Shown: positions 3,301 to 45,919 of the stretch, one piece after another | How positions within the stretch are numbered: position 1 is the first letter of the stretch | How the letters are laid out: the number at the start of each line of letters is the position of its first letter | NCBI GenBank assembly: GCA_002189035.1 | Contig: NEEC01000004.1 | Span: 4,030,001 to 4,094,000 of the forward strand | Reading direction: 5' to 3' | Origin: Utricularia gibba | Lineage: Eukaryota; Plantae; Magnoliophyta | DNA: 64,000 nucleotides | Position numbers and translations under genes: made by a program | Notes under the pieces: generated by a model | What the model was told of the DNA's origin: nothing | Database searches by the model: none | What the model saw: only the letters and a program-made list of their open reading frames with translations

Positions 3301-4001
3301 GCAACAAGGTTTTCGTTTTTGGTGTTCTCGTTATATGGCTGTAGTTTTCTGATGAAATTGATGTTTCCCTCACACACACGCGAAGTGATGCACCTTGTCG
3401 TATATCATTGAAAGTGAGGGCTGTTCTATGATTGTGGTGTGTGGGTTTTCTGGGAATTGTGTGGATAAGCGGTTCTCTTTCTGGATTTTTGGTTTGTGAT
3501 ACTTGGTCTTAGTTTAAATTCTTCGTGAACTCCTCCTCTTGGTCGTCACTTTTGCATCAGGGTTGTGTTTCAGGTGGAGTTCTCGTTCAGTTCTTTTTGG
3601 ATTGCATCATGTTTTAAGCATCAAATAGCATGCCTTCTTCATACGGCTGCCCTTCTCCCAACTTTTGATGAGCATGAGTTCCGGTTTTCTTTCAGTTTTG
3701 AGATTCATTTTCACATCTCTTTTTCTTTTGGTCTGGCTATCTGTTTTCGTGAGGTCGAGGATTTGATAAGCTCATTTTAGGCTTCTGTTCATGATGAAAT
3801 TGGTTCTTCTGGGTACCACGATTGGGCCGCTGGTTCTAGTACTTGTTTTTTGTAAATGTTTTTCTGATAATACGTTGCATATGAGTACACGTACCTTGGT
3901 TTCTGATTGTGTTTCTTTTTTGTTTCTTCTCTGTGATGTTCTTCTTGTTCACAGAAGTATCTTACTCTTCTTTTGCATTGGGGCTCAAAACAATCTGGCT
4001 T

Positions 4002-5846
4002 ATGGATCCACACACCAATAAAAGAAGGCCAAGGGCCCTTGTGGATGCTAAAAAACGCTCTGGTGCTTCTTTCATTGATGGTGATGACAAGGCTCAGTTT
4101 TGTACCAGAATTGGATGCAGTGGAAGAATCAAGTATGCTCAGAGTTCCAAAATCCAAAGCAATTTTCATACTTCAGACTCATCTAATACTTCCCGGATGA
4201 TGACTGCGGCAAAGTCATCTCCTGATTCAAGAAGAAAGTTAGCTTCACAATTGAAATATGCCCACTCCAATCGTAGTCTGTCAACTGACTCAGAGGATGC
4301 ATCTTCAACAAGCAGTCCATCTGAAAGTCAGGGAGAATCACAGCAGGCTGGCGTAACCAAAAGAAGGATATCTGTTGCATCATTGGCTCGACCTCGAAAA
4401 CCTTTTCCTCCTACAGCAAGTTCTATGAATCGGAGCCCTTCATTGGTTTCTTCCACACCATCCTTCTCACGAAGCTCAGATTCTTCCACTCCAGCCACAA
4501 GAAGCTTAGACTTACCGCTGTCAAACAGTAGTGGTGGAGCAAGGTTAGGTCGCAGAAATCTGAAGTATAGTTCAGCATCTGATTCTCGGGGAAGTTATTC
4601 ATCTCCAGGATCCCAATCCTTTAGCAAAAATTCCAAGAAAAAGAACGCTTTTGATGCTGAACGCAATTCTTCAAGATTTGGGGGAAAGGCTGCTGCTGCA
4701 GCATCCACGGATACACGATGCCTTCCTTCCAGCAGTACACTGACCAGCGTAAGAAACAAGGGGAATTCTGCTGCTTGTCAGGGAGGCAGTAGTTCTTCGT
4801 CTTCCAGAGGCAAGATGCCAGTGAGCACAAACACAAGCACAAGAATGAGACCTCCTACCCAGAATGAAGGAAGCCATTCATATGCTGTAACGCCCACTAC
4901 AAGCACTGGAATTCCTGGTAATGCAAGAGTTGTTGGACAGCGTTCGGTCAGTGCAGGCAACCCAAGATCTTGCAGTCTTCCTAGAGGTTGCAGAGATCGT
5001 CAACCCACAAACATGCCCCCTTCTCGCGCTCTTGGTGCGGTGAGATTCACTCCTTCAACAAACCGAGATTGCTTTCACCACTATGACTTCAATGGAGCTG
5101 CTGAGGTATAAACTTTTGCTTCAGTGGCGAAAAGCTTTAATCCTTGCAGACGACTCTTTTGTGTTCAACTATTCTCTTAATCCTTGCAGATGATGTTAGC
5201 ACTCGAGTCAGAATTTGAACAGGATGAAGATATGAGTCCAGAGGTATGCGTTCTTTTCTTGCATTCTTTTAACTCATAAAATTCGGGAATTCCGCCACTC
5301 ACATTTTATTCTCCCCATCTACAGCAAATGCTCCTTGAAATGAGCCTCTTTCTAGGCAGGCTCACTCTCTTTGATCAACACCAGGACATGAGGCTAGACA
5401 TAGATAACATGTCATACGAGGTTTGCCTTTCATGATTTTCCCCTCAATGCCACAGTTCCTTCTCTAGAAGAAACCGATGACATGGATCCTTTTGACAGGA
5501 ATTGTTAGCTTTAGAAGAAAGAATAGGATCCGTGAGCACACCCCTCTCCGACGAAGAACTTTCAAGGTGCCTGAAGAGAAGCGTTTATCAACAAGCCTCA
5601 GGGTCCAGTGGTGACGACACCAAATGCAGCATTTGCCAGGTCTCTCTCCCTTCTTCAATCTCCCTTGGATTCATATTGCAACATGCAGTTTTGTTTGAAT
5701 CGTTGGTTGTGCAGGAGGAGTATGTGATGGGAGACATGATCGGAGTGCTATCCCGGTGCTGCCACCAGTACCATGAAACCTGCATAAGCCAGTGGCTGCG
5801 GCTCAAGAACTGGTGCCCCATCTGCAAGGCGTCCGCTGCAACATGA
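4002..5846 (+). CDS. RING-H2 E3 ubiquitin ligase (MBR/CTL-like, long Ser-rich N-terminus)
   Basis: N-terminal FCTRIGCSGR motif. Short exons give DMRLDIDNMSYE|ELLALEERIGSV. C-terminal RING CSICQ|EEY...CCHQYHETCISQWLRLKNWCPICK. ATG at 4002 is in frame with ORF 3909-5111. Confidence 0.92.
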
Positions 5847-8884: not shown

Positions 8885-9911
8885 GGAGCCGTTGCTTAAC
8901 GATCAAGATTTTGGGAAAGGGGAAGAAATGAAGTGGAGATGTGATGATATATAGAACCAGAAACCACCAGTGCAGTGACAGGACAATTTGGTAACGCGCT
9001 GCTTTTTTGCTTTTGTTTTTTTAAAGAAAGAGATACAACTTACAAGAGGTATATAACATGCTCATGGAAAAAGTTGAAACTTTCTTTTGATTGATAAGGT
9101 TGCACCGTATACATTTCTTTTCTCCCTTTGATGTGTTCATTCCTACTCAAGCGTTAGGATAAAACACTTTACAGGTCGATTTCTTCCCCATGCTTATCCC
9201 CACCGTTACAAAAAAGCACAAGTCCAACTAAAACGCAACCAACCAACTGCTCAAGTGTATGCCGTGCGAGAAGCAGGCAAATCATTTTGTAGTATACCCT
9301 AATGTGATCGGCCTGTCCGCCTTCCATCTATCAGCTTGTTTTGGTGCTCTAGTTGCTGGTACTTTGACTTCGAGCGACCCATCTGTGTGTGGGGGATGGA
9401 AATAATCCCCCATAATTTTTCAGTTGACTGGAAAAAATTGAACTTCCGTGGGTAATTAATGCGTATTTTAAACCGTGCATCTTCATGTATGGTGTTGATG
9501 GGTTACCTGCAAGAACTGGATCTGCGGCCAAATCTCGGTGGTAATGTTGGGTTACCCACAAGATGTTTAATATAAACCCTCACAAAACTAAAGTAAAAAC
9601 GTCGTCTTGTTGACCTGGTTTCAGGTTCCTCCACGTATTGATCGCTTGAACTGGGCGAAATCTCATAGATCAGTGTATGGTACTTAACTTCGTTCCCGTG
9701 TATTGGCATTATGCTGATTAATTACTCTGATACCGTAGGCGGGCAGTGCCAGCATCGTTCTAGTTTCTACCTTCCTTTATTAGCCTAATCTGTTCTAATT
9801 TCAGTAGCAGGGAATATCAGCCAGCTACACTTGTTTCTTCAGTCAAAAGAGTGCATCACCAATCACCATTCCCATTATCTCGGACCTTTGGCATTGAATT
9901 CTGAACAGGAG

Positions 9912-12900
9912 ATGGAAGACTCAAGGAATCCTCTGGTTTTTGCTTACTATGTCACTGGCCATGGCTTTGGCCACGCAACCCGTGTTGTTGAGGTCTTTTA
10001 TTTTTATTTTTCAAATTTTCTCATTGGATTTGATTCCACAAAAAAGAATGTATAATCAGTCATATGGGTATCTACCAAAAGTTTTCTTCTTAGTTTAATG
10101 CGATTGTGATTCCTGCATGTGGAGAATATCTTATTCACTTATCTCCTTTTTGTGGTTGTTTTATATTCTGTTTAGTCTCCTCAGAATAAGATGACTGGTT
10201 TGAGGAATTGAGTTTGTTAATGTCATTGATCGTTGTCTAATTCAGTTGTGTTCCTTGAGTATAACCTCTAAATGTTGAATACTGTGTGTTTGGGTGTTTT
10301 AACATATAAATATCGATCAGGTTGCTCGTCATCTCATACGTTTGGGGCATGTAGTTCACATGGTCACTGGTGCACCTGATTACATGTATACGACGGAGAT
10401 ACAGTCCCCTCGACTCTTCTTGCGCAAGGTTCTGCTTGGATTTCGTGTCTGCTTGATCTTCATTTTGGCTAAAAGTACTTTTCCACAATTTTAGGTTCTT
10501 CTAGATTCTGGAGCTGTTCAAGCAGAAGCCTTGACAGTTGATCGCCTTGCATCCTTACAGAAGGTGAATGGATTACTCCTAAGTTTGCTTTTTTATGTAG
10601 CCAATGATCATATCTTTTGCTTCTCAAGGTTTACTGCATACTTTTTGTGTGTTTAGTACTCCGAGATGGCTGTAGTGCCTCGAGAGTCCATTTTAAAGAC
10701 TGAAGTCGCGTGGCTAAAAGACATCAAAGCTGATTTTGTGGTAGAGTTTCATATTTTACTATTCTTTCAACGAGCTACCTGAGAAGTTGATGTTGCATCT
10801 GTCATTTATCTTCATATATAAACTCAGTTTGCTGGACTTTAGATTCTTCATGATTGATTCTTCCTTGGAGTTGTCTATCTTTCTCATCACTGAAGCAGTT
10901 GACTGCACATGTTGCTGTTTTAGCAGAGCTTGAAGGCCCAAGAATCCATATGCATTTCCTAGTAATGTGGCTTAAAGCACATCTTTTTCATTATAACTTG
11001 TCATCATAACTTGTAAGTGCAGGTGTCTGATGTTGTTCCCATTGCCTGTCGAGCCGCATCTGATGCTGGAATTCGTTCTGTCTGCATCACGAATTTTAGG
11101 TAACTTTTCTGTATTGTATGCATCCCTTTGCCTATAAAGGAAGACATTCCAGCAAAGCTGCTTCAAACCCCGTTAACTCTGTATATCCAGTTTCTTGATA
11201 GAGTTTTGTTCATTTTATTAGCCATACCGAATTCATAGATGATGAGTTTTATCATTCCCTCCCCATTTTTTCCTGCATATTCATTTGACTCTCTTTGATC
11301 AGTTGGGATTTCATATACGCTGAGTATGTAATGGCTGCCGGTCTGCATCACAGAGCAACAGTATGGCAGGTAAGCTTTGTAAACCCTTTGCTCTTTCTTG
11401 AGATAGAATTTCTAAGAATCTGTCTGATAAACTTTGATGTTATGTTTTGTTACACTAGGTAGCGGAGGATTATTCGCACTGTGAATTCGTTGTTCGTCTC
11501 CCCGGACACTGTCCAAGTACTAGCAGATTAACTTGATGTTCTTTAGAAACTTCCACTTCACTTGCTAGCATTTAGAATTGCCAGCATTTTTGGTAATTTT
11601 TGTGTGCATTTTCATGGCAGTGCCTGCTTTTCGTCACGCCATTGATGTGCCCTTAGTAGTTAGGAGATTGCATAAATCAAGACAAGAGGTAATCCAGAAG
11701 CAGTTTTCCCTTGGAGTGAATGAAGCCATTTGAATTATGCTGTTTTTTGCATTGTACTAAGGTGAGGACAGAGCTCGGAATCCCTCAAGATGCCAGGGTG
11801 GTGATCCTCAACTTTGGTGGTCAGGTGAAGACTATTCTCAACTCTCTGCAGAATGACTGTTGCTGATGTGCCCCATTCTAACGCTTGTTTCCTGGATATC
11901 AAGTTGCAGCCTGTCGGTTGCACATTAAAGGATGAGTTCCTGCCTGATGGATGGCTCTGCCTGGTATGCTGTTCAAACCATCTTAATGCATCATGCCTTC
12001 CTGCAATGCAACACAACAAAAGTGCTTGAATGTTGCGTTCAGGTTTGTGGTGCTTATGAAATGGAACTTCCCTCAAATTTTATAAAGTTGGCAAAGGATA
12101 CTTACACCCCTGATGTAATAGCTGCATCCGACTGCATGCTTGGTACTACTTGAGCTGCTCCTGTCGCTACTTCGGTTAAAAAGTAGACTCCTTTCATCTT
12201 CTGCTTTTTCAGGGAAGATTGGGTATGGAACAGTCAGTGAGGCACTTGCATACAAGATACCTCTCGTCTTTGTTCGCAGGGACTACTTCAATGAAGAACC
12301 ATTTTTGAGAAACATGCTTGAGGTATTTGATTTTTTTTGTTGTCATGGACAGCATCTTCGGATGAATCCTAAAAACCGTTGTCTGTTATCAGCATTACCA
12401 CACTGGAGTTGAGATGATACGGAGGGATTTACTTTCTGGGCACTGGGGACCGTACCTCGAGCATGCCATTTGTCTAAAGCCATGTTACCAAGGGAGCATA
12501 AATGGTGGAGAGGTACCAATTCACTTTGAAGTCTAGCCCTTCGTAGGATGAGGGTCACCAGTTCTTCACTGTTTCTGCTGGCCATTTTTCATTGAATACC
12601 CAGATTGCAGCTCATCTGCTGATCGATACAGCCCGTGGCAAAAGCTATGTCCCTGACAAGGTGATGGCCTCTTGCCTCGACTGGCATTGTTCTGAACAAA
12701 CCGGCTGATTTCCTTTCTATCTTGCTTCAACCGTGCTAGGCTGATGGGTCTCGCAGACTCCGTGATGCTATTGTTCTTGGGTATCAACTACAACGAGCTC
12801 CCGGAACAGATCTCAGCATCCCGGAGTGGTACACAAATGCAGAAAACGAACTCCTGAGATCTCCACTGGCTGAAGCAGAGGACAAAAATTTCAACTCTCC

Positions 12901-15628
12901 GTTGAGTGACTTTTCAACATCAATTTTTGTTTCTCTTATTTGGTTACCTGCTGAAAGCTCTTTCCATATTTTTGGTTAGGTACCCTGGAGATTTCGAGAT
13001 ACTGCACGGTGATGTCATGGGCCTTTCGGATACAGCAAATTTCTTGAAATGCTTATCCGAACTTGATAATGCCATTCACTCCCCTGAGAAACGCCAGATG
13101 AGAGAGCATAAAGCTGCAGCAAAGCTCTTCAATTGGGAGGTATTCTTTTAGTTAGCAGAAAATCAAGTTACAGATGCATGGATAACCATATTTCTTATAG
13201 GAGGACGTTTACATCGCAAGAGCACCAGGGAGGCTCGATGTGGTTGGTGGAATCGCAGACTACTCCGGAAGCCTTGTCCTGCAGGTACTTAATCCATCTC
13301 CACCCACTAACAGAAAATACCAATATAACTGCTGCCATTGCTGCATCTTTGCTTGACGATTTTTCTTCGAATTCGCTGCCTTCAAATACTTACAGTTGCC
13401 CATACGAGAAGCTTGCCACGTTGCATTGCAAAAAACTGATCCAACAAAACATAGACTATGGAAGCATGCACAGGCTCGTCAAGATGCCAAGGGACTTGGT
13501 CCATCTCCTGTTCTACAAATAGTATGTAATAATGCTTCAATGAGCATAGCTTGCTCTCTGTTCCAGTAACTTCGCACGGTTTCACATACCAATATAATCC
13601 TCTTTGTTTTAGGTATCCTATGGATCTGAGTTGAGCAACCGTGGACCAACATTTGACATGGATCTTTCAGATTTCATGGATGGTGAACACCCTATGTCAT
13701 ATGAGAAAGCCAGAAACTATTTTTCCCGTGATCCATCTCAAAAGTAAATTAATCTTTCTCGTACTCATTTTCCACTCAATGGTCTGCTTCTGCTCTTAAC
13801 CGTACTTTTCTCCTAGATGGGCAGCGTATGTAGCTGGAACCATTCTTGTTCTAATGAAAGAACTTGGTGTCCGGTTCGACAACAGTATAAGCATGTTGGT
13901 GTGTGTCAGCATGATTACTCATTACTTTACAAAGCTTCACATCCACTTGAGATTGGAGTTTTCTTTTACTTGTAGGTTTCTTCTGCTGTACCCGAAGGCA
14001 AAGGCGTTTCTTCCTCTGCTGCTGTGGAGGTCGCTACCATGTCTGCTGTTGCTGCATCGCATGGTTCCACAGGCTCTCTTTTATGACTTTTCTAAACATG
14101 TGTATGCTGTGCATTCCACAATAAGTTCGTTGCCATCTTTTCCTGTCAGGATTGGAGATCAGCCCCAGAGAACTGGCTTTGCTCTGCCAAAAGGTTAATT
14201 CTGAGCGCCATTTTGGCTTGCCACTTCATGATATCTGACTGTTTTCTGATGTAAAGGTGGAGAATCATGTCGTTGGAGCTCCTTGCGGTGTCATGGATCA
14301 GATGGCTTCCGCTTGTGGTGAAGCTAATAAACTTCTTGCTATGGTTTGCCAGGTAAATAAGGTCTTCATTCTGAATCATCTGTAACATCATTCTAACAAA
14401 GTGAGACCACTGTGCAGCCTGCTGAAGTCTTGGGGCTCGTAGACATTCCGAGCCACATACGGTTTTGGGGAATTGACTCCGGCATCCGCCACAGGTGCCA
14501 AATAAGAGCTTACCACAGTAGCTTAAGAACTTCATAATCTAATATACTCCAATGAACTATCTGCAGTGTAGGTGGAGCTGATTATGGTTCTGTGAGGATA
14601 GGAGCTTTTATGGGTCGGAAAATCATCAAATCCGTTGCATCAGAGCATTTGTCCAATGGCATCACATCTGATGATCATGAGGCGGATGGTGTTCAACTCC
14701 TTGAGTTGGAGGCTTCTATCCAGTACTTGTGCAACTTGCCACCACACAGGTGACAATGGTAACAAAGGGTTCTTTATCCAGTCTGTAATTGTGTTAAACA
14801 ATCAATGCATCCCGCAGATACGAAGGTCTTTACAGTAACAAGGTTCCTGAGAGTGTAGTTGGAGACAGATTCTTGAAGAAATACGGAGACCATGATGATT
14901 CAGTCACTGTGATCGACAGCAAGAAGAGCTATGGAGTCAAAGCAGCAACAATGCATCCAATTTACGAAAATTTTCGAGCTAAGGTTTAGCCATACACCAC
15001 CATTTCTCAAATCTCTCCTCTGCTACTCCCGTTTTCACAGTTATGCTCCTTGCTATACGAGATTTCAGGCATTCAAGGCACTACTAACATCATCTAGTTC
15101 AGACGATCAGCTCACTGCCCTGGGTGAACTGTTGTATCAAGTAAGACAATTTTCATCTATCTATCCAACTCCAGTAAAGTAGCTGAATGCTTGATAGTAA
15201 TCGAATCTTGCCTGCAGTGCCATTACAGCTACAGCGCGTGTGGGCTCGGGTCCGACGGTACCGATCGGCTGGTTCAGCTAGTGCAGGAGGTGCAGCACAG
15301 CAAGAGCAAATCGGCCGAAGCAACATTGTACGGTGCTAAGATCACCGGCGGCGGATCCGGAGGAACTGTCTGTGTCGTTGGTAGGAATTGCCTCCGTAGC
15401 AGCGACCAAATTCTTCAGGTTAGACTCTCTGGTGATGGAAAATGAATCCATTGATAGGATTAGCATTTCAGAGATGGATTTTTGCTCGTGCAGATCCAGA
15501 AGAAGTACAACGACGCAACGGGGCATATGCCGCTGATCTTCGAAGGATCATCCCCCGGTGCCGTGACATTTGGGTATCTGAAGATACGCCGGTGCCGCCA
15601 GCCCGTGCTGCCGGAGCGAAACACATAA
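9912..15628 (+). CDS. ARA1: L-arabinokinase (glycosyltransferase-like N-domain + GHMP kinase), many short introns
   Basis: [20 protein letters not shown]; [37 protein letters not shown]; [19 protein letters not shown]; [13 protein letters not shown]; [17 protein letters not shown]; ends [29 protein letters not shown]. Confidence 0.95.
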
Positions 15629-34721: not shown

Positions 34722-36664
34722 ATGGGTTGGAGGTATAAGGCTGGGTTGGGAATGATTGGTGCTTTTGTTCTCGTATGGGTCGCTGCTGCTGAGGTTACGC
34801 AGGTGGGTCTTTGAAGCTCTGGATTTTGAATTAACATAATCTTTTGGTTGTATTTGAGGTTTTCGCTCCTTGGATGTGTGAAGCTTTGAGTTTGCTTATT
34901 ATCATGATCTTGGACTTGGTGTTTTGCAGAAAATTTTCGTGGAGTACAGGCAGCCTTTTGCTCTTACGTATATTTGGATCTCGATGATGGTTGTCTATAT
35001 TCCTGTAGCGTTATGTAGAGATTATGTGTACAGTTTAGTAGAAAAGAGGTGTCTGAGAAGGTCTGTTAGTGGAACTAGGTGGCTGGATTACTATTTTGGT
35101 GTTGATGAAGCACAAGAAGATTCAGAAGCAGTTCTGAAGGGTTACCTTATGAGGGATATGGGGTTGCATGAAATGGAAGCTGGGCAGACGTTGTTGCTGA
35201 AGGAGGAGGATGAGTTGAGCTTTGGAGGAAGGGGACATGAACTAGGCTGGAAGGAAGTAGTCAAGTGCAGCCTTTATTTAGCACCTCTATGGTTTGCGAC
35301 AGAGGTAGTTCGTCAGCATTCTGGATGATTTTCTCAAATTTTCGGCTGCATGAGGCTCATAAAATAAAGAAATGTACTCATGCTTATTGCAACGTTCTGC
35401 AGTATTTTTCGAATTCTGCTTTGGCGCACACAAGTGTTGCAAGCACAACTGTGTTAACTTCAACGTCAGGCCTCTTCACACTTCTTATTGGAGCAAGTAT
35501 TGGGCAGGAGACGATAAGCATTGCTAAGGTTTCAGCAGTATTGATTACTGTGGTTGGTGTCGCAATGACTACTGTTGGAAAAACTTGGGCCTCGGACGAG
35601 AATCTTCTTACTGATGAGTAAGCCTATGCAATTCTTCTGCAGTAACATTTATGCTCATTTTTAAAATGATATGACGATATTTCCTTACACGGATTGGGGA
35701 TAAAATTATTCAATATTTGATGCATCATTTTCATACGTATAGCAGAACAAACAAGCATTCCATAACTGGAGACATATTTGGTCTGCTCTCTGCGGTGTTT
35801 TATGGCACATTTACAGGTATAGGAATAAGGATTTCTGTTAGTTGCCTTGTTGTAATGTTAGGTATACCTACATTGGTGAAGCATGACCTTTGAGTGCTTT
35901 TACAGTGCTTCTGAAGCGATTCGCTGGATCAGGAGGAGAGCAGGTTGATGTACAGAAATTCTTTGGATATATTGGACTGTTCACACTAGTTGGTTTCTGG
36001 TGGCTTGGTAGGAAACCTTTCATTGATGTACTTTTGTCATGTTTGATCCCCTTGTACACCTGTTCAAGTTGGAACTTCATCAATTTTACAGTTATGCGTA
36101 TAAAGATTGAAAACCCAAAGAATCCCATCGAATTGGTTCTTTTGTGCAGCTTGGCCACTTAGTTCTCTCGGAATCGGGCCAGAATTCAGTCTTCCAAGTT
36201 CAGCATCGATTTTCGAGGCCATTTTGGTCAGTGGCTTTGTAGGAAGTGTTCTTTCTGATTACTTATGGTATGAACCCTCCTCACTTTCCTGACTTTAAGT
36301 ACTATCGCCATCAAAGTAAGATCTTTTGCCTTATGCGGTAGTCATTCAATCTAGACTTGCTTTCTGATAATCAAAACAGGGGTCTAGCAGTCATCTGGAC
36401 AACTCCGTTGGTGGCAACACTGGGCATGTCCTTAACGATTCCAGTGGCAATGCTGGCCGATATGCTAGTCCATGGGCGGCAGTACTCAGCTGTATTCATC
36501 ATCGGTTGTGTTCAGGTGGGTGCTGTTTTGTTCTGGAATCTTGGCCTTCATCATTCGTTTGGCTTTTGTATTAACATTTGCATCTCGTTCAGGTATTTTT
36601 AGGTTTCATCATTGCCAATGTCTCCGACAGGCGTTCATGTACAAGAAGGCAAATGTTATCTTAG
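34722..36664 (+). CDS. EamA/DMT (SLC35F/THI74-like) membrane transporter
   Basis: MGWRYKAGLGMIGAFVLVWVAAAEVTQ|KIFVEYRQPFALTY; YFSNSALAHTSVASTTVLTSTSGLFTL; VDVQKFFGYIGLF; GSVLSDYLW; TTPLVATLGMSLTIPVAM. Confidence 0.9.
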
Positions 36665-36828
36665 AAATGAAGCTGACAAACTGTTTGAAGTTGCAACTCC
36701 TGAATGAAAGAGTCAGCAACCGCGCTTATAATACGTGTAGAAGAGTTGGATGTATAGAAACAAGAATTTTACACAGGAGAATAGAAATATGAAATTTCTG
36801 ACCTTATGTTCTCAGCAAGCCGAAGTTA

Positions 36829-39800
36829 TTACACAACTTTATCAAACAGAATTTTAGATATATGGCTATCGATCTCCTCAGTAGAGAAAAATGCCCTGTA
36901 GTAAGATGTCCGGGCAAACATAAAAAAGCTTTGCTTGATGTGCTTGGAGATGGCATCTGAGTCCTGGAAGGCCAGCTGCACCAGCAACTGCATGTCCTTT
37001 TCTATTGCTTTGATTGCTTCCTTGTTCCCCTTCTCTGTCAGGTAGAAGCAAATTTTGTGGGTGATCCCAGAAATAGCTTTGTATTCCTGCTCCAGAATTG
37101 AGTCTTTGGAGACTGTGTGCCCTCCTACAAGTTTCACCGTCAGAACAATGAGCTCCTCCACTTCGATATCCTTTTTGCTATTGTTTCGGATTGCATTTAG
37201 CCATTCTTCCCACTGCAGCATGATTTCTTGAATGTCATCATGAATGTGAATTTCTAAAATTACAGCACACTGATAGTAGGCTAACCGAATGACGTAAAAG
37301 TTCATGGATTTCGGTGTTGATCCATTTCCTTGCCTCTGTCTCTAGATCTTGTATGCATTCCATGAGGACTTCACCAAGTTTTGTGATGGTGTTTTCCCGA
37401 GAGCTACAAGATAGGACTTGATAGGATAGATTTTAACTAAACAAAGCTACTAAAGTGAACATGTACCATATCTTCGATGATTTTTCATTGAATTCACATG
37501 CTGCTAAGAGTGCTTGGGAGACAGTTTGTAACTTAGCCCATGCCATTCTCTCTGCTGTTCTCTCTTTCTCAAAGATGGTTGCTGCCGCTAAGAAGAAAGC
37601 TAGGAGGAGGTCATTTTTACACACTCCTGTTTCTTCCAGAGCGCAAGAACTGTACCAGCTGTGGGTCGAAAAGATAAAGCGTTTCACAAGTCATTCTTCG
37701 AGACATACTGCTTCCAAAATAAGGTAGCCATTACTCTTGTATGCAGTCCCATTCGATCTGATGTTGAGACTGGCATATGTTGAAGTCCAACTTCCCGAGC
37801 TCTAGGTACGCTTCTTGGTTGATTTCAGGCATCCTTGAAAGATGAAAGCATCATGAGATGACATTTTTATACATGAGTGCTGAAACGTTTGAATGGAAAC
37901 AGTTGAACCTGTACAAGGATTTGGCGATCCATATGTCATCTGGATCATATATCTCAAGATAAAACCGAGCTTCGATTCGAGGTAATGCAGCATACCATGG
38001 CATTTCCAGGCCACGCTTTATCTATGCAAAGAGGCGTATGATTTGAATATGCAGAAACATGTTTGACTAGTACTGTCAAAATGGTAATACCTCATTTGGC
38101 AGATGTTTGGAAATCAACCATTTATCAAGAAGTTGGTTTTTCTGTAGCCTTTGTTTTAGAAACCTCTGAGAAAACTCCCTGGCTTGTTCCAAAACCGATT
38201 CCCCAGGAAATAAAACTTGGGAAGCTCTATAGAGATTGAAAATTGGTGATGGGGATTCGAATCCTTGACCAACGTAGCAAGTAAATTCATCACCCTTCTT
38301 GAAGTTTATCAGTGCCCCTGCATGCAGAGAACATCTCATTTTCAAAGCATTGCCTTTATTCATAATCTGTTTGGTGAATCCTTTTACATGAAGCTTGATC
38401 CATCTTACTGGGAGTAACATCGTATCCGTGCAACCTAAGAAGTCTGAAAGCCATGGAGGTATCATCAATATCTGGAAAATCAGACTCTCTTGCGCTAAAA
38501 ACTCCTTTGTCAGTCCAAAACCTTGAATATTAAAATAGACTGGTTAAAACTCATGCTGACAGTGCGGCTTGTGTATATGGTAAATTGACTTTGCACCTGT
38601 AGACATAATCTAAGCAATTCCTGATCTCTGCTTCGAAGAACCGGGAGATCCCGAGGCGCTGAAGGCGATCAACTAACCAAACCCTTGAAAATATGTCCAC
38701 AGGATACGCAGTTGGTGCTGAATTAAAGCAACATAGTCAGACTTCAAAAGCTCAAGACGTTCAAGTGATGCTGAATGTAATTGTTTCAACCTCCTCCATT
38801 GAATTTGTCCACAACATACTTGATATATTCGATACAGCTTTCATTTTTTGTCTGTGTAATGGCATAGGAAGTTGAAGCGGGGGAGGTCAGGAAGCAGCCT
38901 TTCGGAGTCTGCAACCTGACCAGTTTCGACCACTGTAGTTTTCCAAATGATTCAACGTGCCCCAGCCCTTCCAGGTTGTAAAGTAAGCATGTTGGAACTT
39001 CATAGAGGAGATCCTTAGGCACACTGCAAGCAGTCCAAGCTTATCGAACTAAACAGGAGAATAATATTGTGTATATGCAACATGGCCTGCAGCCTCACCG
39101 TCTCATTTTCTCTTCTCTGACAGAAAAAATCTCTTGAATGGCAGGATCATTATAGGGAATCCCTTCAATGCCAAGTTCCGTAGCTTTGTCAAGAAGGGCA
39201 GGAAATACAACCTCGAATCCGCACGTCATATGCTCAGTCTTCGCCTCAGAAAGCTTGCCCATGTTCTCTTTGATAAACGCCACTCCTGTCAACAAAAAAC
39301 TCAAGGAAATGGATGAGATTGCACCATGCACAAGTATGCTGAATTCCCTAGATTTATCATTGCACCTTTTTCGATTTTATCATGGTGAACATCCCAATGT
39401 TTCAGTGCAACAACACAAGCTAGAGTATTGAGCAATCGATCATACACCAAGAAAAACTGCTGGTCACCCCATGAGCCATCAGAAAGCTGATTGTTGGATA
39501 TCCATGCTAGACTCGATGGGAAGTGTGGAGTATGTGCATCACTTCCCTGAAGATTTTCAATGAGAGCAACCCATGCAGTGTCATAAGGCGATACAGATAT
39601 TCTCCCATCATCCATCGAGCTCAGTAAATTCTTGATAAAGGTGATATACTCCCTCTCCTCCTGTTAACAGGAAACATGCGAGAAGGGATTGTTTCTTCAG
39701 GTAAATAAATTTATACTCTGTTCGCGTGTTTTCTTAGGCAGTAGAAGGTGCTCTTACCTCATTCTTTCCAAGCATTCTATCATCACACACATCTTTCTCT

Positions 39801-40024
39801 ATGTATACTCTTGGCACCTTTACTCTACCTGCAACCAAGTTATATTTAGGACAATATTACGATTCTGAGAACATCCGGAAGCATGCCATACCTTTGAACT
39901 GCCTGAAACAGAGGGAGCTGGTGTTGAGGATTGAACATGGCTTCACGTTCACTGGAGATGGGATAGATTTAGACAGCGAATATGCAAAGCTGAACCCGAG
40001 ATGAGGATTCACAAATGCATGCAT
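36829..40024 (-). CDS. CPS: Class II diterpene cyclase (TPS-c, CPS-like), copy A (LLYNLEG / APTAYPVD)
   Basis: 13 exons by hand. Plastid-type N-terminus; [12 protein letters not shown]; QLSDGSWG; [16 protein letters not shown] (DXDD); no DDXXD; ends KILFDKVV*. No stop or frameshift found. Confidence 0.93.
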
Positions 40025-41545
40025 GCTTGATGGTCACTGATGTCCTGATGCGTCACAGCACAACACAGTTTTCTTCTGTTTATGTTGGGACTGATGGCCC
40101 TTCAACTTTAGATCACTAGCAGAAATGTGCCCTTGTTGAAGAATGTTTTCCTTCGTCTTGAAACTGCAGTAAGAAAAGTTAGAATGCGAAACCTCATATT
40201 TGGCTCTTTGTTGCCATTCAACATCACCTTCTCTAGACAACAATCTTTATCATAAATGCCTACATGCCTTGTAAAAGCAGTTGCGGTGGTGCCAAACACA
40301 TTACTAAACTGGAATATATACAATACAGCACCCGCAACAGCTGATGGCAGAGAAGCTTCCTGCTACAAATCTGTATATACCTTATCTTCAGCAAATCACA
40401 TAACGAGGACAGATATTAGACAGAATTTGGAAGTTGGATAGAAGTATAAACCTGATAAGCTTCCTGAAGCAGTCACCAGAATCCCCTTTGCGTTGGTGTG
40501 TCACTGGCTTCTTCTCTTTGGAACTATACTGAATCCAAGAGAAACATAAAACTTGAGAGGTTCTGAAAAACTAAATTCTAATACAAAAAGAAGTCTTTTA
40601 TATATTTACTAAATTCTAGTTAGGATGTGACTGTCCCCCATTTACTGGTTGCCCATTCCCTTCACTGTTTTTTACACGTGACCGGTGACCCTACCCAAGT
40701 CCGGCGGCTGTTGGTTTCCGCATAGTCCAGTCCTTGTTACACAAAGTCGGTGTTTGATAGGTATATTAATATATATTATCTCGATATAAATTTATCTTGA
40801 TTTAAGATATAAAAATAAAGAATAATGACAAATGGATATATTTGAAAAATACTCATCTCTCTGCTTTTTATTTTGAAAATAATTATTCTTTCAAAACATT
40901 TTTGGACCAACAAATTCCTAGATATTCATTCCATCATATAATTTATTTAAATTAAAATATATTTAATCTTGAAATTTTTATTAAATAATTATTATTGTAT
41001 TCGAAAAAAAATTTCATATAAAGTATACATTTAGCAGTTATAGCTTTGTTTTAATAATATTCTTTTTTTGTGTTGGTCCATTTGGCACGTGTATTGTAAT
41101 TATTTATATAAGGTTGTGACACTTAATAGATCATGGTATTCAATGTGCGTGTCCCTTTGAATAATAATTTTAGTCAATATGCTGGTTATGTTAGGTGCTA
41201 TTTTATATTAAGATTTCAATTTTAGTTTTGAGTTGCTTGTAACAATCCATTGAATCAATACTTTCGGAATTTTGTAGTAAATCATCGTTGAAATCCGTTG
41301 AACTAGAGTTGAAACTAATCAAATTATACATGACTTCAGAAGGAGATGCTGAATGGGAACAAAGAGCCAAATATGAGGTTTGGCATCCTAACTTTTCATA
41401 CTGCAGTTTCAACACGAAGGAAAACATTTTTCAACAAGGGCATATTTCTGCTAGTGATCTAAAGTTGAAGAGTAATCAGTCCCAATATAAACAGAAGCAA
41501 ACTGTGTTTTGCTGTTATGCATTAAGACATCAGTGACCATCAAGC
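40025..41545. promoter_or_regulatory. Divergent intergenic region of the two cyclases, with two G-boxes
   Basis: ATGs at 40024 (-) and 41546 (+). CACGTG at 40675-40680 and 41086-41091. Function inferred only. Confidence 0.5.
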
Positions 41546-44500
41546 ATGCATGCATTTGTGAATCCTCATCTCGGGTTCAGCTTTGCATATTCGCTGTCTA
41601 AATCTATCCCATCTCCAGTGAACGTGAAGCCATGTTCAATCCTCAACACCAGCTCCCTCTGTTTCAGGCAGTTCAAAGGTATGGATGCTTCCGGATGTTC
41701 TCAGAATCGTAATATTGTCCTAAATATAACTTGGTTGCAGGTAGAGTAAAGGTGCCAAGAGTATACATAGAGAAAGATGTGTGTGATGATAGAATGCTTG
41801 GAAAGAATGAGGTAAGAGCACCTTCTACTGCCTAAGAAAACACGCGAACAGAGTATAAATTTATTTACCTGAAGAAACAATCCCTTCTCGCATGTTTCCT
41901 GTTAACAGGAGGAGAGGGAGTATATCACCTTTATCAAGAATTTACTGAGCTCGATGGATGATGGGAGAATATCTGTATCGCCTTATGACACTGCATGGGT
42001 TGCTCTCATTGAAAATCTTCAGGGAAGTGATGCACATACTCCACACTTCCCATCGAGTCTAGCATGGATATCCAACAATCAGCTTTCTGATGGCTCATGG
42101 GGTGACCAGCAGTTTTTCTTGGTGTATGATCGATTGCTCAATACTCTAGCTTGTGTTGTTGCACTGAAACATTGGGATGTTCACCATGATAAAATCGAAA
42201 AAGGTGCAATGATAAATCTAGGGAATTCAGCATACTTGTGCATGGTGCAATCTCATCCATTTCCTTGAGTTTTTTGTTGACAGGAGTGGCGTTTATCAAA
42301 GAGAACATGGGCAAGCTTTCTGAGGCGAAGACTGAGCATATGACGTGCGGATTCGAGGTTGTATTTCCTGCCCTTCTTGACAAAGCTACGGAACTTGGCA
42401 TTGAAGGGATTCCCTATAATGATCCTGCCATTCAAGAGATTTTTTCTGTCAGAGAAGAGAAAATGAGACGGTGAGGCTGCAGGCCATGTTGCATATACAG
42501 AATATTATTCTCCTGTTTGGTTCGATAAGCTTGGACTGCTTGCAGTGTGCCTAAGGATCTCCTCTATGAAGTTCCAACATGCTTACTTCACAACCTGGAA
42601 GGGCTGGGGCACGTTGAATCATTTGGAAAACTAGAGTGGTCAAAACTGGTCAGGTTGCAGACTCCGAAAGGCTGCTTTCTGACCTCCCCCGCTTCGACGT
42701 CCTATGCCATTACACAGACAAAAGATGAAAGCTGCATCGAATATATCAAGTATATTGTTGACAAATTCAATGGAGGAGGTAGAATCAATCACGTTCAGCA
42801 TACATTTAGCATCACGTGAACGTCTTGAGCTTTTCAAGTCTGACTGTGTTGCTTTAATTCAGCACCAACAGTGTATCCTGTGGACATCTATTCAAGGCTC
42901 TGGGCAGTTGATCGCCTTCAGCGCCTCGGGATCTCCCGGTTCTTCGAAGCAGAGATCAGGAATTGCTTAGATTATGTCTACAGGTGCAAAGTCAATTTAC
43001 CATATACACAAGCCGCACTGTCAGCATGAGTTTTAACCAGTCTATTGTAATATTCAAGGTTTTGGACTGACAAAGGAGTTTTTAGCGCAAGAGAGTCTGA
43101 TTTTCCAGATATTGATGATACCTCCATGGCTTTCAGACTTCTTAGGTTGCACGGATACGATGTTACTCCCAGTAAGATGGATCAAGCTTCATGTAAAAGG
43201 ATTCACCAAACAGATTATGAATAAAGGCAATGCTTTGAAAATGAGATGTTCTCTGCATGCAGGGGCACTGATAAACTTCAAGAAGGGTGATGAATTTACT
43301 TGCTACGTTGGTCAAGGATTCGAATCCCCATCACCAATTTTCAATCTCTATAGAGCTTCCCAAGTTTTATTTCCTGGGGAATCGGTTTTGGAACAAGCCA
43401 GGGAGTTTTCTCAGAGGTTTCTAAAACAAAGGCTACAGAAAAACCAACTTCTTGATAAATGGTTGATTTCCAAACATCTGCCAAATGAGGTATTACCATT
43501 TTGACAGTACTAGTCAAACATGTTTCTGCAGATGCAAATCATACGCCTCTTTGCATAGATAAAGCATGGCCTGGAAATGCCATGGTATGCTGCATTACCT
43601 CGAATCGAAGCTCGGTTTTATCTTGAGATATATGATGCAGATGACATATGGATCGGCAAATCCTTGTACAGGTTCAGCTGTCTCCATTCAAAACATTTCA
43701 GCACTCGTGTATAAAAATGTCATCTCATGATGCTTTCATCTTTCAAGGATGCCTGAAATCAATGAAGAAGCTTACCTAGAGCTCGGGAAGTTGGACTTCA
43801 ACATATGCCAGTCTCAACATCAGATCGAATGGGACTGCATAAAAGAGTAATGGCTACCTTATTTTGGAAGTAGTATGTCTCGAAGAATGACTTGTGAATC
43901 GCTTTTTCTTTTCAACCCACAGCTGGTACAGTTCTTGCGCTCTGGAAGAAACAGGAGTGTGTAAAAATGACCTCCTCCTAGCTTTCTTCTTAGCGGCAGC
44001 AACCATCTTTGAGAAAGAGAGAACAGCAGAGAGAATGGCATGGGCTAAGTTACAAACTGTCTCCCAAGCACTCTTAGCAGCATGTGAATTCAATGAAAAA
44101 TCATCGAAGATATGGTACATGTTCACTTTACTAGCTTTGTTTAGTTAAAATCTATCCTATCAAGTCCTATCTTGTAGCTCTCGGGAAAACACCATCACAA
44201 AACTTGGTGAAGTCCTCATGGAATGCATACAAGATCTAGAGACAGAGGCAAGGAAATGGATCAACACCGAAATCCATGAACTTTTACGTCATTCGGTTAG
44301 CCTACTATCAGTGTGCTGTAATTTTAGAAATTCACATTCATGATGACATTCAAGAAATCATGGTGCAGTGGGAAGAATGGCTAAATGCAATCCGAAACAA
44401 CAGCAAAAGGGATACCGAAGTGGAGGAGCTCATTGTTCGGACGGTGAACCTTGTAGGAGGGCACACAGTCTCCAAAGACACGATCCTGGAGCAGGAATAC

Positions 44501-44752
44501 AAAGCTATTTCTGGGATCACTCACAAAATTTGCTCCTACCTGACAGAGAAGGGGAACAAGGAAGCAATCAAAGCAATAGAAAAGGACATGCAGTTGCTGG
44601 TGCAGCTGGCCTTCCAGGACTCAGATGCCATCTCCAAGCACATCAAGCAAAGCTTTTTTATGTTTGCCCGGACATATTACTACAGGGCATTTTTCTCTAC
44701 TGAGGAGATCAATAGCCATATATCTAAAATCCTGTTTGAGAAAGTTGTGTAA
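41546..44752 (+). CDS. CPS: Class II diterpene cyclase (TPS-c, CPS-like), copy B (LLHNLEG / APTVYPVD)
   Basis: 13 exons splice in frame at GT-AG sites. Same motifs as copy A, including DIDD at ~43108-43119; ends KILFEKVV*. Confidence 0.94.
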
Positions 44753-44931
44753 TAACTTCGGCTTGCTGAGAACATAAGGTCAGAAATTTCATATGTCTAT
44801 TCTCCTGTGTTTGTTTCTATACATTCAACTCTTCTACAGGTATTATAAGAGCGGTTGCTGACTCTTTCATTCAGGTCTTGCAACTTGAAACAGTTTGTCA
44901 GCTTCATTTCGAAGATAACATTTGCCTTCTT

Positions 44932-45566
44932 GTACATGAACGCCTGTCGGAGACATTGGCGATGATGAAACCTAAAAATACCTGAACGAGATGCAATTGT
45001 TAATACAGAAGCAAAACGAATGATGAAGGCCAAGATTCCAGAACAACACAGCACCCATCTGAACACAACCGATGATGAGTACAGCTGAGTAGTGCCTCCC
45101 ATGGACTAGCATATCAGCCAGCATTGCCACTGGAATCGTTAAGGACATGCCCAATGTTGCCACCAACGGAGTTGTCCAGATGACTGCTGGACCCCTGTTT
45201 TGATTATCACAAAGCAAGTCTAGATTGAATGACTACCACATAAGGCAAAAGATCTTACTTTGATGGCGATAGTATTTAAAGTCCAGAAATTGAGGAGGGT
45301 TCATACCATAGGTAATCAGAAAGAACACTTCCTACAATGCCACTAAGCAAAATGGCCTCAAAAATCGATCCTGAACTTGGAAGACTGAAAAATTCGCGCC
45401 CGCTTCCAAGAGAACTAAGTGGCAAGCTGCACAAAAGAACCAAGCCGATAGGATTCTTTGGGTTTTCAATCTTTATACGTATAACTGTAAAATTGATGAA
45501 GTTCCAGCTTGAACAGGTGTACGAGAGGATCAAACATGACAAAAGTACATCAATGGAAGGTGTCCT
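44932..45566 (-). pseudogene. 5'-truncated duplicate of the EamA transporter (last exons only)
   Basis: Mirror of 36010-36664: GSVLSDYLW, TTPLVATLGMSLTIPVAMLADMLVHGRHYS. It begins inside an intron and has no ATG or promoter part. Confidence 0.9.
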
Positions 45567-45919
45567 CTCCCCTCCAGTGGGGAGATGGGAATGCTAATAA
45601 ATTGTGTTAAGACGGGTAAAATGCTAATAAATTGTGCTAGTAGGGTAAATTGCATATTAAATACATTTGAAAACAGTAAAAGACCGACTGTTGAAAAATA
45701 CTCATCTCTCTTTTTTCTAGTTTGAAAATACACATACTCTCAAAACACTTTTTGATAAATACCTATACTTAATATTTGTTTAAAATTGAATACAAAAAAA
45801 TTAAATACATTGACAATCTATATTCATATTCATTATTTTATTAAAATTTTTAAAAATAAAAATAAATGTTATATTCTTTGTATTTAAATGTTATATCTAT
45901 ATAATATTGTGCCGCTAAT

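Follow-up and report, generated by a model that had tools for sequence, protein, structure and literature searches.

Thousands of labdane-related compounds owe their scaffolds to class II diterpene cyclases, whose products cannot yet be predicted reliably from sequence. A locus of Utricularia gibba (GenBank assembly GCA_002189035.1, contig NEEC01000004.1, positions 4,030,001 to 4,094,000; this stretch of 64,000 nucleotides is called the window, and its first letter is position 1 in what follows) raises the problem in a compact form. Two head-to-head cyclase genes, here called copies A and B, differ at only 22 residues, one of which is Tyr in A and His in B at a position equivalent to H263 of the ent-copalyl diphosphate (ent-CPP) synthase AtCPS. 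Do these two enzymes make the same diphosphate or different ones? A first-pass annotation, made from the sequence, had proposed that a young duplication has neofunctionalised at this residue to yield two scaffolds. The reading that we prefer, and to which we assign slightly better than even chances, is that the locus is a palindrome carrying a pair of genes from a lineage of syn-copalyl diphosphate (syn-CPP) synthases, in which copy B would be ancestral and copy A would have been remodelled, probably with a different or additional product. A minimally diverged pair with clear ancestral and derived states, from the little-studied syn-CPP lineage of the Lamiales, bears on whether the positions equivalent to AtCPS 263, 323 and 329 form a coupled switch outside the ent-CPP synthases (ent-CPSs), and the locus also poses the question of whether functional differences within a palindrome can be maintained by selection in the face of gene conversion. 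Should the two enzymes turn out to have one and the same product, this is an ordinary duplicated gene.

Two transcribed cyclase genes in a genuine palindrome

Gene models based on three-frame translation and splice signals place the coding sequence (CDS) of copy A at 36829-40024 on the minus strand and that of copy B at 41546-44752 on the plus strand. Each has 13 exons, encodes 761 amino acids without an internal stop, and has introns of 62-97 nt that are all of the GT-AG type. Both proteins carry a DIDD catalytic-acid motif at codons 364-367 (43108-43119, plus strand, in B; 38461-38472, minus strand, in A), along with QLSDGSW, SPYDTAW, DKW, FTCY and WIGKSLY (B) or WIAKSLY (A); the definitions of DKW, FxC(F/Y) and WxxKxxY as active-site motifs are those of PMC12410513. 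The DDxxD and NSE/DTE motifs of class I enzymes were looked for in both copies and found in neither. Because DIDD and the other class II motifs are present and the class I motifs are absent, both copies are predicted to be monofunctional class II diterpene cyclases of the plant TPS-c family.

The two coding sequences differ at 39 nucleotides and 22 amino acids (97.1% identity), and they are identical over codons 1-229 (exons 1-4), 331-455 and 536-640. The first-pass annotation had described this layout correctly: exons 1-4 and 7-8 are identical or nearly so, both copies are intact and keep DIDD, a cluster of differences lies in the exon that follows the His/Tyr site, and DADDIWIGK in B stands opposite DPDDIWIAK in A. 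The His codon of B is CAC (42589-42591, plus strand) and the Tyr codon of A is TAC (38978-38980, minus strand), both at codon 244, and codon 493 in the WIGKSLY motif encodes Gly in B (43655-43657, plus strand) and Ala in A (37923-37925). The active-site residues read His244, Thr309-Val310, Tyr316, Leu319, Ala321 and Gly493 in copy B, and Tyr244, Thr309-Ala310, Phe316, Val319, Leu321 and Ala493 in copy A.

A phmmer comparison with solved structures aligns the His of copy B with that of PTTLLHSLEG in AtCPS. In 3pya this residue has chain index 180, and adding the offset of 83 gives H263; the offset was cross-checked on AtCPS N322, which is index 239 of the same structure. The earlier identification of codon 244 with AtCPS H263 therefore stands, but its extension to the His/Asn catalytic-base dyad does not, since the position of N322 is Thr in both copies (PTA in A, PTV in B) and the dyad is thus incomplete in both. 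The position of the regulatory His of AtCPS, H331, is Arg in the window copies, and Tyr497 of both copies aligns with Y457 of GrTPS2 and H501 of OsCPS4. Just after the LEG that follows the His/Tyr site, at codons ~248-253 (42600-42617 in B; 38952-38969 in A), both copies contain six additional residues (GHVESF or similar) that AtCPS, OsCPS4 and GrTPS2 lack. This insertion is also found in the Genlisea and Erythranthe orthologues, with a shorter version in Sesamum and SdCPS2, and may be a marker of this subclade.

The genes occupy an inverted duplication with arms of about 4.2 kb. Arm A (36010-40239, minus) and arm B (41331-45566, plus) are defined by the inverted-repeat pairs I1-I6 and by a single end-to-end blastn alignment of 4238 bp, which shows 96.5% identity with 124 mismatches and 9 gaps. 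Between them lies a unique spacer of 1.09 kb (40240-41330) that holds the 5' untranslated region (5'UTR) exons of copy A. Spacer and diverged inner arm ends together form a shared, divergent upstream region of 1.5 kb, with the start codons of A and B 1.5 kb apart and facing each other.

Foldback artefacts are known from long-read assemblies, and a structure of this kind could in principle consist of two haplotypes of one locus, or of a chimeric foldback read, joined as a palindrome. Public contigs that were assembled de novo from raw reads were compared with positions 40250-45650; they came from a 2013 DNA run (X1), a 2019 DNA run from another study with a visibly different genotype (X7), and RNA from two studies (X6 and X9). 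DNA contigs from both X1 and X7 bridge the junction between spacer and arm B, and contigs from both also bridge the left end of the spacer into inverted arm A sequence (an 'opposite strands' joint). The outer end of arm B is spanned by an X1 contig without any difference. One observation would suit an artefact: the X1 depth in identical tracts is about twice that of form-specific contigs, which two alleles would show likewise. Against it stand a difference of 3.5% between the arms and the asymmetry of spacer and outer flanks, with a complete transporter gene at the arm A side and only a fragment at the arm B side. Because junction-bridging contigs were found in two studies and genotypes and the flanks are asymmetric, an assembly or haplotype artefact, which the first-pass annotation had raised as a way in which its own claim could fail, was rejected as extremely improbable. 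The palindrome is a genuine structure and holds two paralogues.

Neither copy is silent, a second way in which that claim could have failed. The GT..AG joints in the RNA contigs match introns 6, 7, 8, 9, 11 and 12 exactly, and loose ends match introns 4 and 5. At 43656, 44401 and 44485, among other sites, these contigs include letters of both the A form and the B form. Splicing is seen at intron 9 (43669>43746) in an A-form contig and at intron 11 (44113>44177) in a B-form contig, and the end of exon 5 is joined to the A-form start of exon 6 in the RNA sequence CACCAACTGCGTA. The Tyr codon itself was followed by a word search with the 61 nt of 38950-39010, in which each 31-mer spans that codon. 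All sampled words were present in four RNA runs of a 2020 study and in DNA runs of 2013 and 2016, two thirds in one 2017 RNA run, and one third in two 2019 DNA runs. The Tyr form is thus real and transcribed.

Several further features of transcription were seen in the RNA contigs. An X9 contig covers 40557-40452 and 40370-40268 and continues into arm A, which defines two minus-strand introns in the 5'UTR of copy A, 40451-40371 (GT..AG) and 40267-40164 (GC..AG). Since this 5'UTR contig lies in the spacer, transcription of copy A must start at or beyond 40557. A spliced 5'UTR equivalent for copy B was not seen among the RNA contigs. In addition, three RNA joints in arm A, at 37724-37828, 39334-39405 and 39701-39911 (plus strand), read CT..AC in the sense of the cyclase and so GT..AG on the opposite strand, and one of the three is tied to A-form letters. 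They suggest that an antisense transcript crossing copy A is spliced, and read-through from the upstream transporter gene may be its source.

Gene conversion and the asymmetric change of copy A

The differences between the arms are arranged in alternating tracts. In arm B coordinates, substitutions amount to 10.1% in 41338-41525, none in the 974 bp of 41526-42499 (with one 1-bp indel), 6.4% in 42500-42905, a single one in 42906-43530, 4.4% in 43531-43914, again a single one in 43915-44362, 4.0% in 44363-44740 and 5.5% in 44741-45566. The difference-free runs of 975 and 484 bp were reached in 0 of 20,000 permutations (P < 5e-5). Because identical tracts alternate beyond chance with tracts that differ by 4-10%, the pattern is the one expected where an older duplication has repeatedly undergone gene conversion between its arms, and the identical tract 41526-42499 is read as a recent conversion tract. 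The synonymous divergence (dS) follows suit, at 0.137 for codons 230-330, 0.045 for codons 456-535, 0.068 for codons 641-761 and 0 elsewhere. The suggestion that the duplication is young is doubtful in light of these values: dS reaches 0.137, unconverted tracts differ by 4-10%, and the identical exons reflect gene conversion.

The most diverged internal tract, 42500-42905, with its arm A counterpart at 38675-39069, takes in exon 5, intron 5 and the beginning of exon 6, along with an intron indel of 11 bp. It includes 8 of the 22 amino-acid differences and shows a nonsynonymous divergence (dN) of 0.040 over codons 230-330. In the history that we propose, the cyclase gene and the 3' end of an adjoining transporter gene would have been duplicated in inverted orientation, creating a palindrome with two divergently transcribed cyclases. 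Conversion between the arms would then have homogenised parts of it repeatedly, leaving three tracts identical and others 4-10% apart, with the most diverged internal tract covering the catalytic-base region.

The conversion mosaic seems to differ between genotypes. In X7 a single contig runs over 42925-45389 at a depth of about 2.8x that of the spacer; it has the A form at most A/B differences, and the B form at 43047, 43531, 43566, 43707, 44535, 44731, 44740 and 44887.

The transporter helps to order the arms. An EamA-like gene on the plus strand (34924-36800, an approximate extent taken from open reading frames, ORFs) has its 3' part, 36010-36800, inside arm A; its match to the Pfam EamA model is weak and below the gathering score, and plus-strand GT..AG RNA joints occur in this part of arm A. 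The inverted copy in arm B (44797-45566, minus strand) is truncated, the repeat ending at 45566 with the 5' part not duplicated. A splice donor that is GT at 36516 in arm A has become AT at 45058 in arm B, consistent with decay of the duplicated fragment. Because the transporter is complete only beside arm A and the arm B fragment lacks this canonical donor, these sequence features place arm A at the original locus and mark arm B as the inserted copy. Synteny with Genlisea added nothing to this choice, the Genlisea contig being without the transporter gene.

Which of the two cyclases changed is clear from outgroups. Genlisea, three Erythranthe sequences, a Sesamum gene with His at the site (H-type), and Oleaceae and Cinchona homologues show the states LHN, P(T/A)V, Tyr at the position of AtCPS 329, RLWAVDRL and WIGK, which are the states of copy B. 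Copy B matches the outgroups at codons 244, 259, 289, 310, 316, 319, 321, 487, 493, 504, 661 and 737, and copy A alone matches them at 530 and 749. Where a difference can be polarised, the derived state is that of A in 12-14 cases and that of B in two (530 and 749); a 13:2 split has a binomial P of 0.007. The end branches agree in both trees described below, with 0.029-0.033 for A and 0.001-0.002 for B. By these comparisons copy A is the fast-evolving partner in an asymmetric divergence, and copy B appears strongly constrained and retains ancestral states.

The changes in copy A are also concentrated where they could matter. The active site of AtCPS is lined by the L(H)N, PxxYPxDxFxxxW and WIGKxLY motifs, with F329, the flanks of W333 and WIGKxLY among its parts (PMC12410513). 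A/B differences fall at the equivalents of AtCPS H263 and V323, at active-site F329, at the flanks of W333 and in WIGKxLY. Six changes of copy A lie in these motifs (H244Y, V310A, Y316F, L319V, A321L and G493A), so that 6 of the 22 differences are found within 24 catalytic-motif positions (P = 0.004 inside the unconverted tracts). Tree, polarity and clustering all support the view that one copy, A, is diverging asymmetrically with its changes focused on catalytic motifs. The possibility that the diverged tract of A was copied from a paralogue of the (+)-copalyl diphosphate synthase ((+)-CPS) type was rejected, since the derived residues of A match the c.2.2 states only at Phe316.

A probable syn-CPP synthase lineage and a recurrent substitution

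Family placement relied on about 380 named homologues, gathered by word-indexed searches with exon sequences and homologue identifiers as queries. When the His exon was used in an exhaustive profile search, the best match was a fragment from Erythranthe guttata at 70%, and close full-length relatives were not found. Identity of the window proteins to ent-CPSs is 44-48%, and to Lamiales enzymes of the (+)-CPS type that carry LFS/PHT motifs it is 50-53%. In maximum-likelihood trees A and B together are sister to a fragment from Genlisea aurea, P0333 (support 98), which is 73.8% identical to B. Outward from this group follow the Erythranthe copies and Sesamum 'TPS3-like' genes, and then Oleaceae fragments; the Sesamum genes were given names after VacTPS3 by their depositors. 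The window clade is sister to the clade of (+)-CPSs and peregrinol diphosphate synthases, and a split with support of 100 places it outside the ent-CPS clade. Both other clades contain further Genlisea genes, P0349 being the one in the ent-CPS clade.

The Genlisea fragment, when folded (pLDDT 75) and compared with Swiss-Prot models, matched VacTPS3 first at 70%, followed by (+)-CPSs at 58% and by VacTPS1 and AtCPS at 53%. Syn-CPP synthase activity has been verified for VacTPS3 and SdCPS2, whose sequences share 63% identity (PMC5838521, PMC9824296). Heskes et al. found VacTPS3 to be sister to the (+)-CPS clade (PMC5838521), and Johnson et al. named its clade c.2.1, with VacTPS3 as the only characterised member (PMC6349103). 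Because of their tree position and the identity of their Genlisea orthologue to VacTPS3, we infer that the Utricularia pair belongs to this specialised TPS-c lineage of the Lamiales, c.2.1, with the syn-CPP synthases VacTPS3 and SdCPS2.

Other placements were considered. In the positions where ent-CPSs have LHS, PNV and the regulatory His, the window genes have LHN (B) or LYN (A), PTV or PTA, and Arg, and on these motifs they would not be ent-CPP synthases of the gibberellin type. That they are gibberellin ent-CPSs in a fast-evolving lineage was rejected on the trees and on the separate ent-CPS-clade gene of Genlisea. That A and B are ancient paralogues shared with Sesamum or Erythranthe was likewise rejected: in the trees the copies of each species cluster together, the Sesamum genes are arranged as a direct tandem, and even the most diverged tract leaves A and B 92% identical. 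A biosynthetic gene cluster was rejected as well, as no cytochrome P450 or class I terpene synthase was found among the window ORFs of at least 90 amino acids. Neighbours in the window are MADS, EamA-like, peroxidase, NPH3 and fasciclin genes.

A change like that of copy A has occurred elsewhere in the lineage. Sesamum radiatum (JACGWJ010000022.1) has a direct tandem of three VacTPS3-like genes, at ~2545-4600, 9435-12657 and 21182 to the end of the locus. At the positions equivalent to AtCPS 263, 322-323 and 329, the first reads His/Thr-Val/Tyr and the other two read Tyr/Ser-Ala/Phe and Tyr/Thr-Val/Phe. In the tree these Tyr/Phe genes group with the Sesamum H-type gene and not with copy A, which means that the His-to-Tyr and Tyr-to-Phe changes arose there independently. 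Homologues from Coffea and Oldenlandia read Tyr/Thr-Val/Phe, and one from Cinchona reads His/Ala-Val/Tyr. Among all homologues retrieved, Tyr at the 329 position is rare and, where both motifs are readable, occurs only with His at 263; the cases are the H-type members of the window clade and a fragment, P0366, with an LHS/PCI pattern as in OsCPS4. The coupling of 263 and 329 suggests that the two sites may be functionally linked; two or three events cannot be significant.

A broader version of this idea would hold that His263 with Tyr329 is a single configuration in clade c.2.1, swapped at least twice independently (in this genome, in Sesamum, and perhaps in the Rubiaceae) for Tyr/Phe, often with Val323Ala, so that a second scaffold would be obtained from a syn-CPP synthase and selection would guard the tract against conversion. 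We regard this generalisation as tentative and rather unlikely.

Two side observations concern the genomes of relatives. A Ty1/copia-like element lies between the second and third genes of the Sesamum radiatum array. In Erythranthe guttata (KI632217.1) the orthologous cyclase likewise belongs to a head-to-head pair, at 1645-5783 (minus) and ~9990-14800 (plus). The second member has degenerated, lacking some exons and carrying in-frame stops, and the states of both members are His/Thr-Val/Tyr.

Predicted products and comparison with known systems

What, then, might the two enzymes make? Copy B is most likely a syn-CPP synthase that retains the ancestral activity, judging from its lineage and its conserved states, and we put at about even the chance that the product of copy A differs from that of B. 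The substitutions of copy A would alter the contour of the active site and make a different or additional bicyclic diphosphate probable, with a double-bond isomer, a rearranged product of the halimane or clerodane type, and a different stereoisomer as candidates.

The more specific proposal of the first-pass annotation was that His or Tyr at the H263 position acts as the product switch, with B making a labdane-type CPP and A a kolavenyl-type clerodane or a halimane diphosphate. Its premise is sound for ent-CPSs: AtCPS H263Y makes ent-kolavenyl diphosphate (ent-KPP) (PMC11795633), as does H263F, native KPP synthases have Phe or Tyr at this position, and the reverse substitution gives ent-CPP (PMC11795633, PMC6349103, PMC6779861). 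Copy A has the aromatic residue (Tyr244) and copy B has His, and a syn-type enzyme, OsCPS4, was pushed to a halimadienyl product by H501D/F (PMC10628199). The transfer to the present genes is where the proposal falters. The known kolavenyl cases are derived from ent-CPSs and keep Asn322 or its neighbourhood, as in VacTPS5 (FS/NA) and Callicarpa TPS2 (YS/NV), both in the ent-CPS-derived clade, whereas the window genes lie outside that clade, in the c.2 lineage, and both carry Thr in place of Asn322. GrTPS2, which combines Tyr with Thr as copy A does, makes labda-7,13E-dienyl diphosphate (7,13-CPP), a labdane and not a clerodane, with Y457 steering the deprotonation (PMC11599460). By analogy with these enzymes, the H263Y result would not transfer safely to this lineage, in whose syn-CPP synthases the residue is not known to set the product, and we consider a simple His/Tyr switch to kolavenyl or halimane products improbable.

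Mutants of OsCPS4 are informative about the other sites. Its residues I311 and Y317, the equivalents of 310 and 316, shape the syn conformation, act in stereocontrol and lie near C17 (PMC10628199). A Y317F change alone or an I311V change alone did not alter the product, and a five-site mutant gave some ent-CPP (PMC10628199). The His equivalent to that of copy B, H251, is farther from the substrate, and H251A/D left the product unchanged (PMC10628199).

A number of points weigh against a remodelled copy A with a product of its own. The activities of A, B and their close orthologues are predictions from sequence, and the trees were built without VacTPS3 and SdCPS2, so that the link to syn-CPP synthases is a percent identity by way of the Genlisea fragment. 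Pairwise dN/dS, the codon-based check that had been recommended, gave no signal of positive selection: it is 0.38-0.53 overall (0.4-0.5 in round figures), 0.29 in the active-site tract, and below 1 everywhere. The active-site tract may have been spared by conversion through chance. L319, A321 and the aromatic residue at 737 are invariant in all homologues retrieved and changed only in A (L319V, A321L, Y737S), which fits relaxed constraint and adaptation equally well. H251A/D and Y317F in OsCPS4, the nearest single-site counterparts of the changes in A, had no effect on the product, and in GrTPS2 Y209L lowered activity with the same product, as T268H/N/V also gave the same product (PMC11599460). 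SdCPS2 reads LFN, with Phe at the 263 position in a machine-read and weak alignment, and is nevertheless a syn-CPP synthase. Finally, both Sesamum Tyr/Phe copies share an apparent frameshift in exon 3, and one has another in exon 6, so that these copies may be decaying.

Much of this can be explained if constraint on copy A, as a redundant duplicate, has been relaxed and the gene is either on its way to loss or partitioned from B by expression; it would then make the product of B or work as a poor enzyme. Replacements that are not in excess (dN/dS 0.3-0.5), the substitutions at otherwise invariant sites, the single mutants without effect, the Phe of SdCPS2, the frameshifted Sesamum copies and the degenerate second copy of the Erythranthe pair would all be expected. 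Several results are harder to reconcile with redundancy. Although silent divergence reaches 0.137, copy A has kept an intact reading frame and intact splice sites for all 12 introns. Two independent RNA studies show that it is transcribed and correctly spliced. Its changes cluster significantly in catalytic motifs, and the recurrence of His-to-Tyr with Tyr-to-Phe in Sesamum, and of Tyr/Phe in Coffea and Oldenlandia, is hard to obtain by drift. Redundancy of copy A is an alternative to be taken seriously, and one that we judge unlikely. A remodelled copy A beside an ancestral copy B is the reading that we carry into the following comparisons.

The closest known relatives in function are presumed to be VacTPS3 and SdCPS2, the syn-CPP synthases of c.2.1. 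Like the window genes they are monofunctional class II enzymes with DxDD, and they share the tree position of the window clade as sister to the Lamiaceae (+)-CPS/peregrinol diphosphate clade (PMC5838521). SdCPS2 and the window copies have in common the Tyr of VDIY..RLW and a lengthened LEGLEDLGLDW loop, although the insertion in the window loop is longer, and the site of His in B and Tyr in A is occupied by Phe (LFN) in SdCPS2. A palindromic pair has not been described for either VacTPS3 or SdCPS2.

The kolavenyl enzymes, namely AtCPS H263Y/F, SdKPS, TwTPS14 and VacTPS5, show the same contrast of His and an aromatic residue at the same position as B and A. They differ in being ent-CPSs or derived from them, in c.1 and with an LHS/PNV context, whereas the window genes belong to c.2 and have Thr for Asn. 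The pattern of copy A is reproduced most fully in GrTPS2 of Grindelia robusta (PDB 9B99), in which Tyr209/Thr268 and WIAKTLY give the same Tyr/Thr/Ala/Tyr combination. That enzyme is from an Asteraceae lineage, however, carries F269 and T272 at the positions of Ala310 and Val313 in A, and exerts product control through Y457, a position that is Tyr in both window copies. The pattern of copy B is found in OsCPS4/OsCyc1 (PDB 8IH5, 8I6P), with His at 263 and Tyr at 329 (PCIYPLDVYERLW). This enzyme is only ~40% related and of independent monocot origin, and its H501 and H275 are replaced by Tyr and Leu, respectively, in both window copies. The Sesamum radiatum array, from the same orthogroup, shows the same coupled change as A versus B, but in a direct and not an inverted tandem, and with frameshifts in its Tyr/Phe copies.

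Taken singly, both components of the locus are of known kinds. Duplicates of class II cyclases that diverged at catalytic-base positions are on record from the Lamiaceae, Tripterygium and the grasses. Gene conversion in palindromes is known too. What is distinctive here is their occurrence in a lineage of the syn-CPP synthase type with few characterised members, with a clean polarity between the two copies and an independent replicate in Sesamum.

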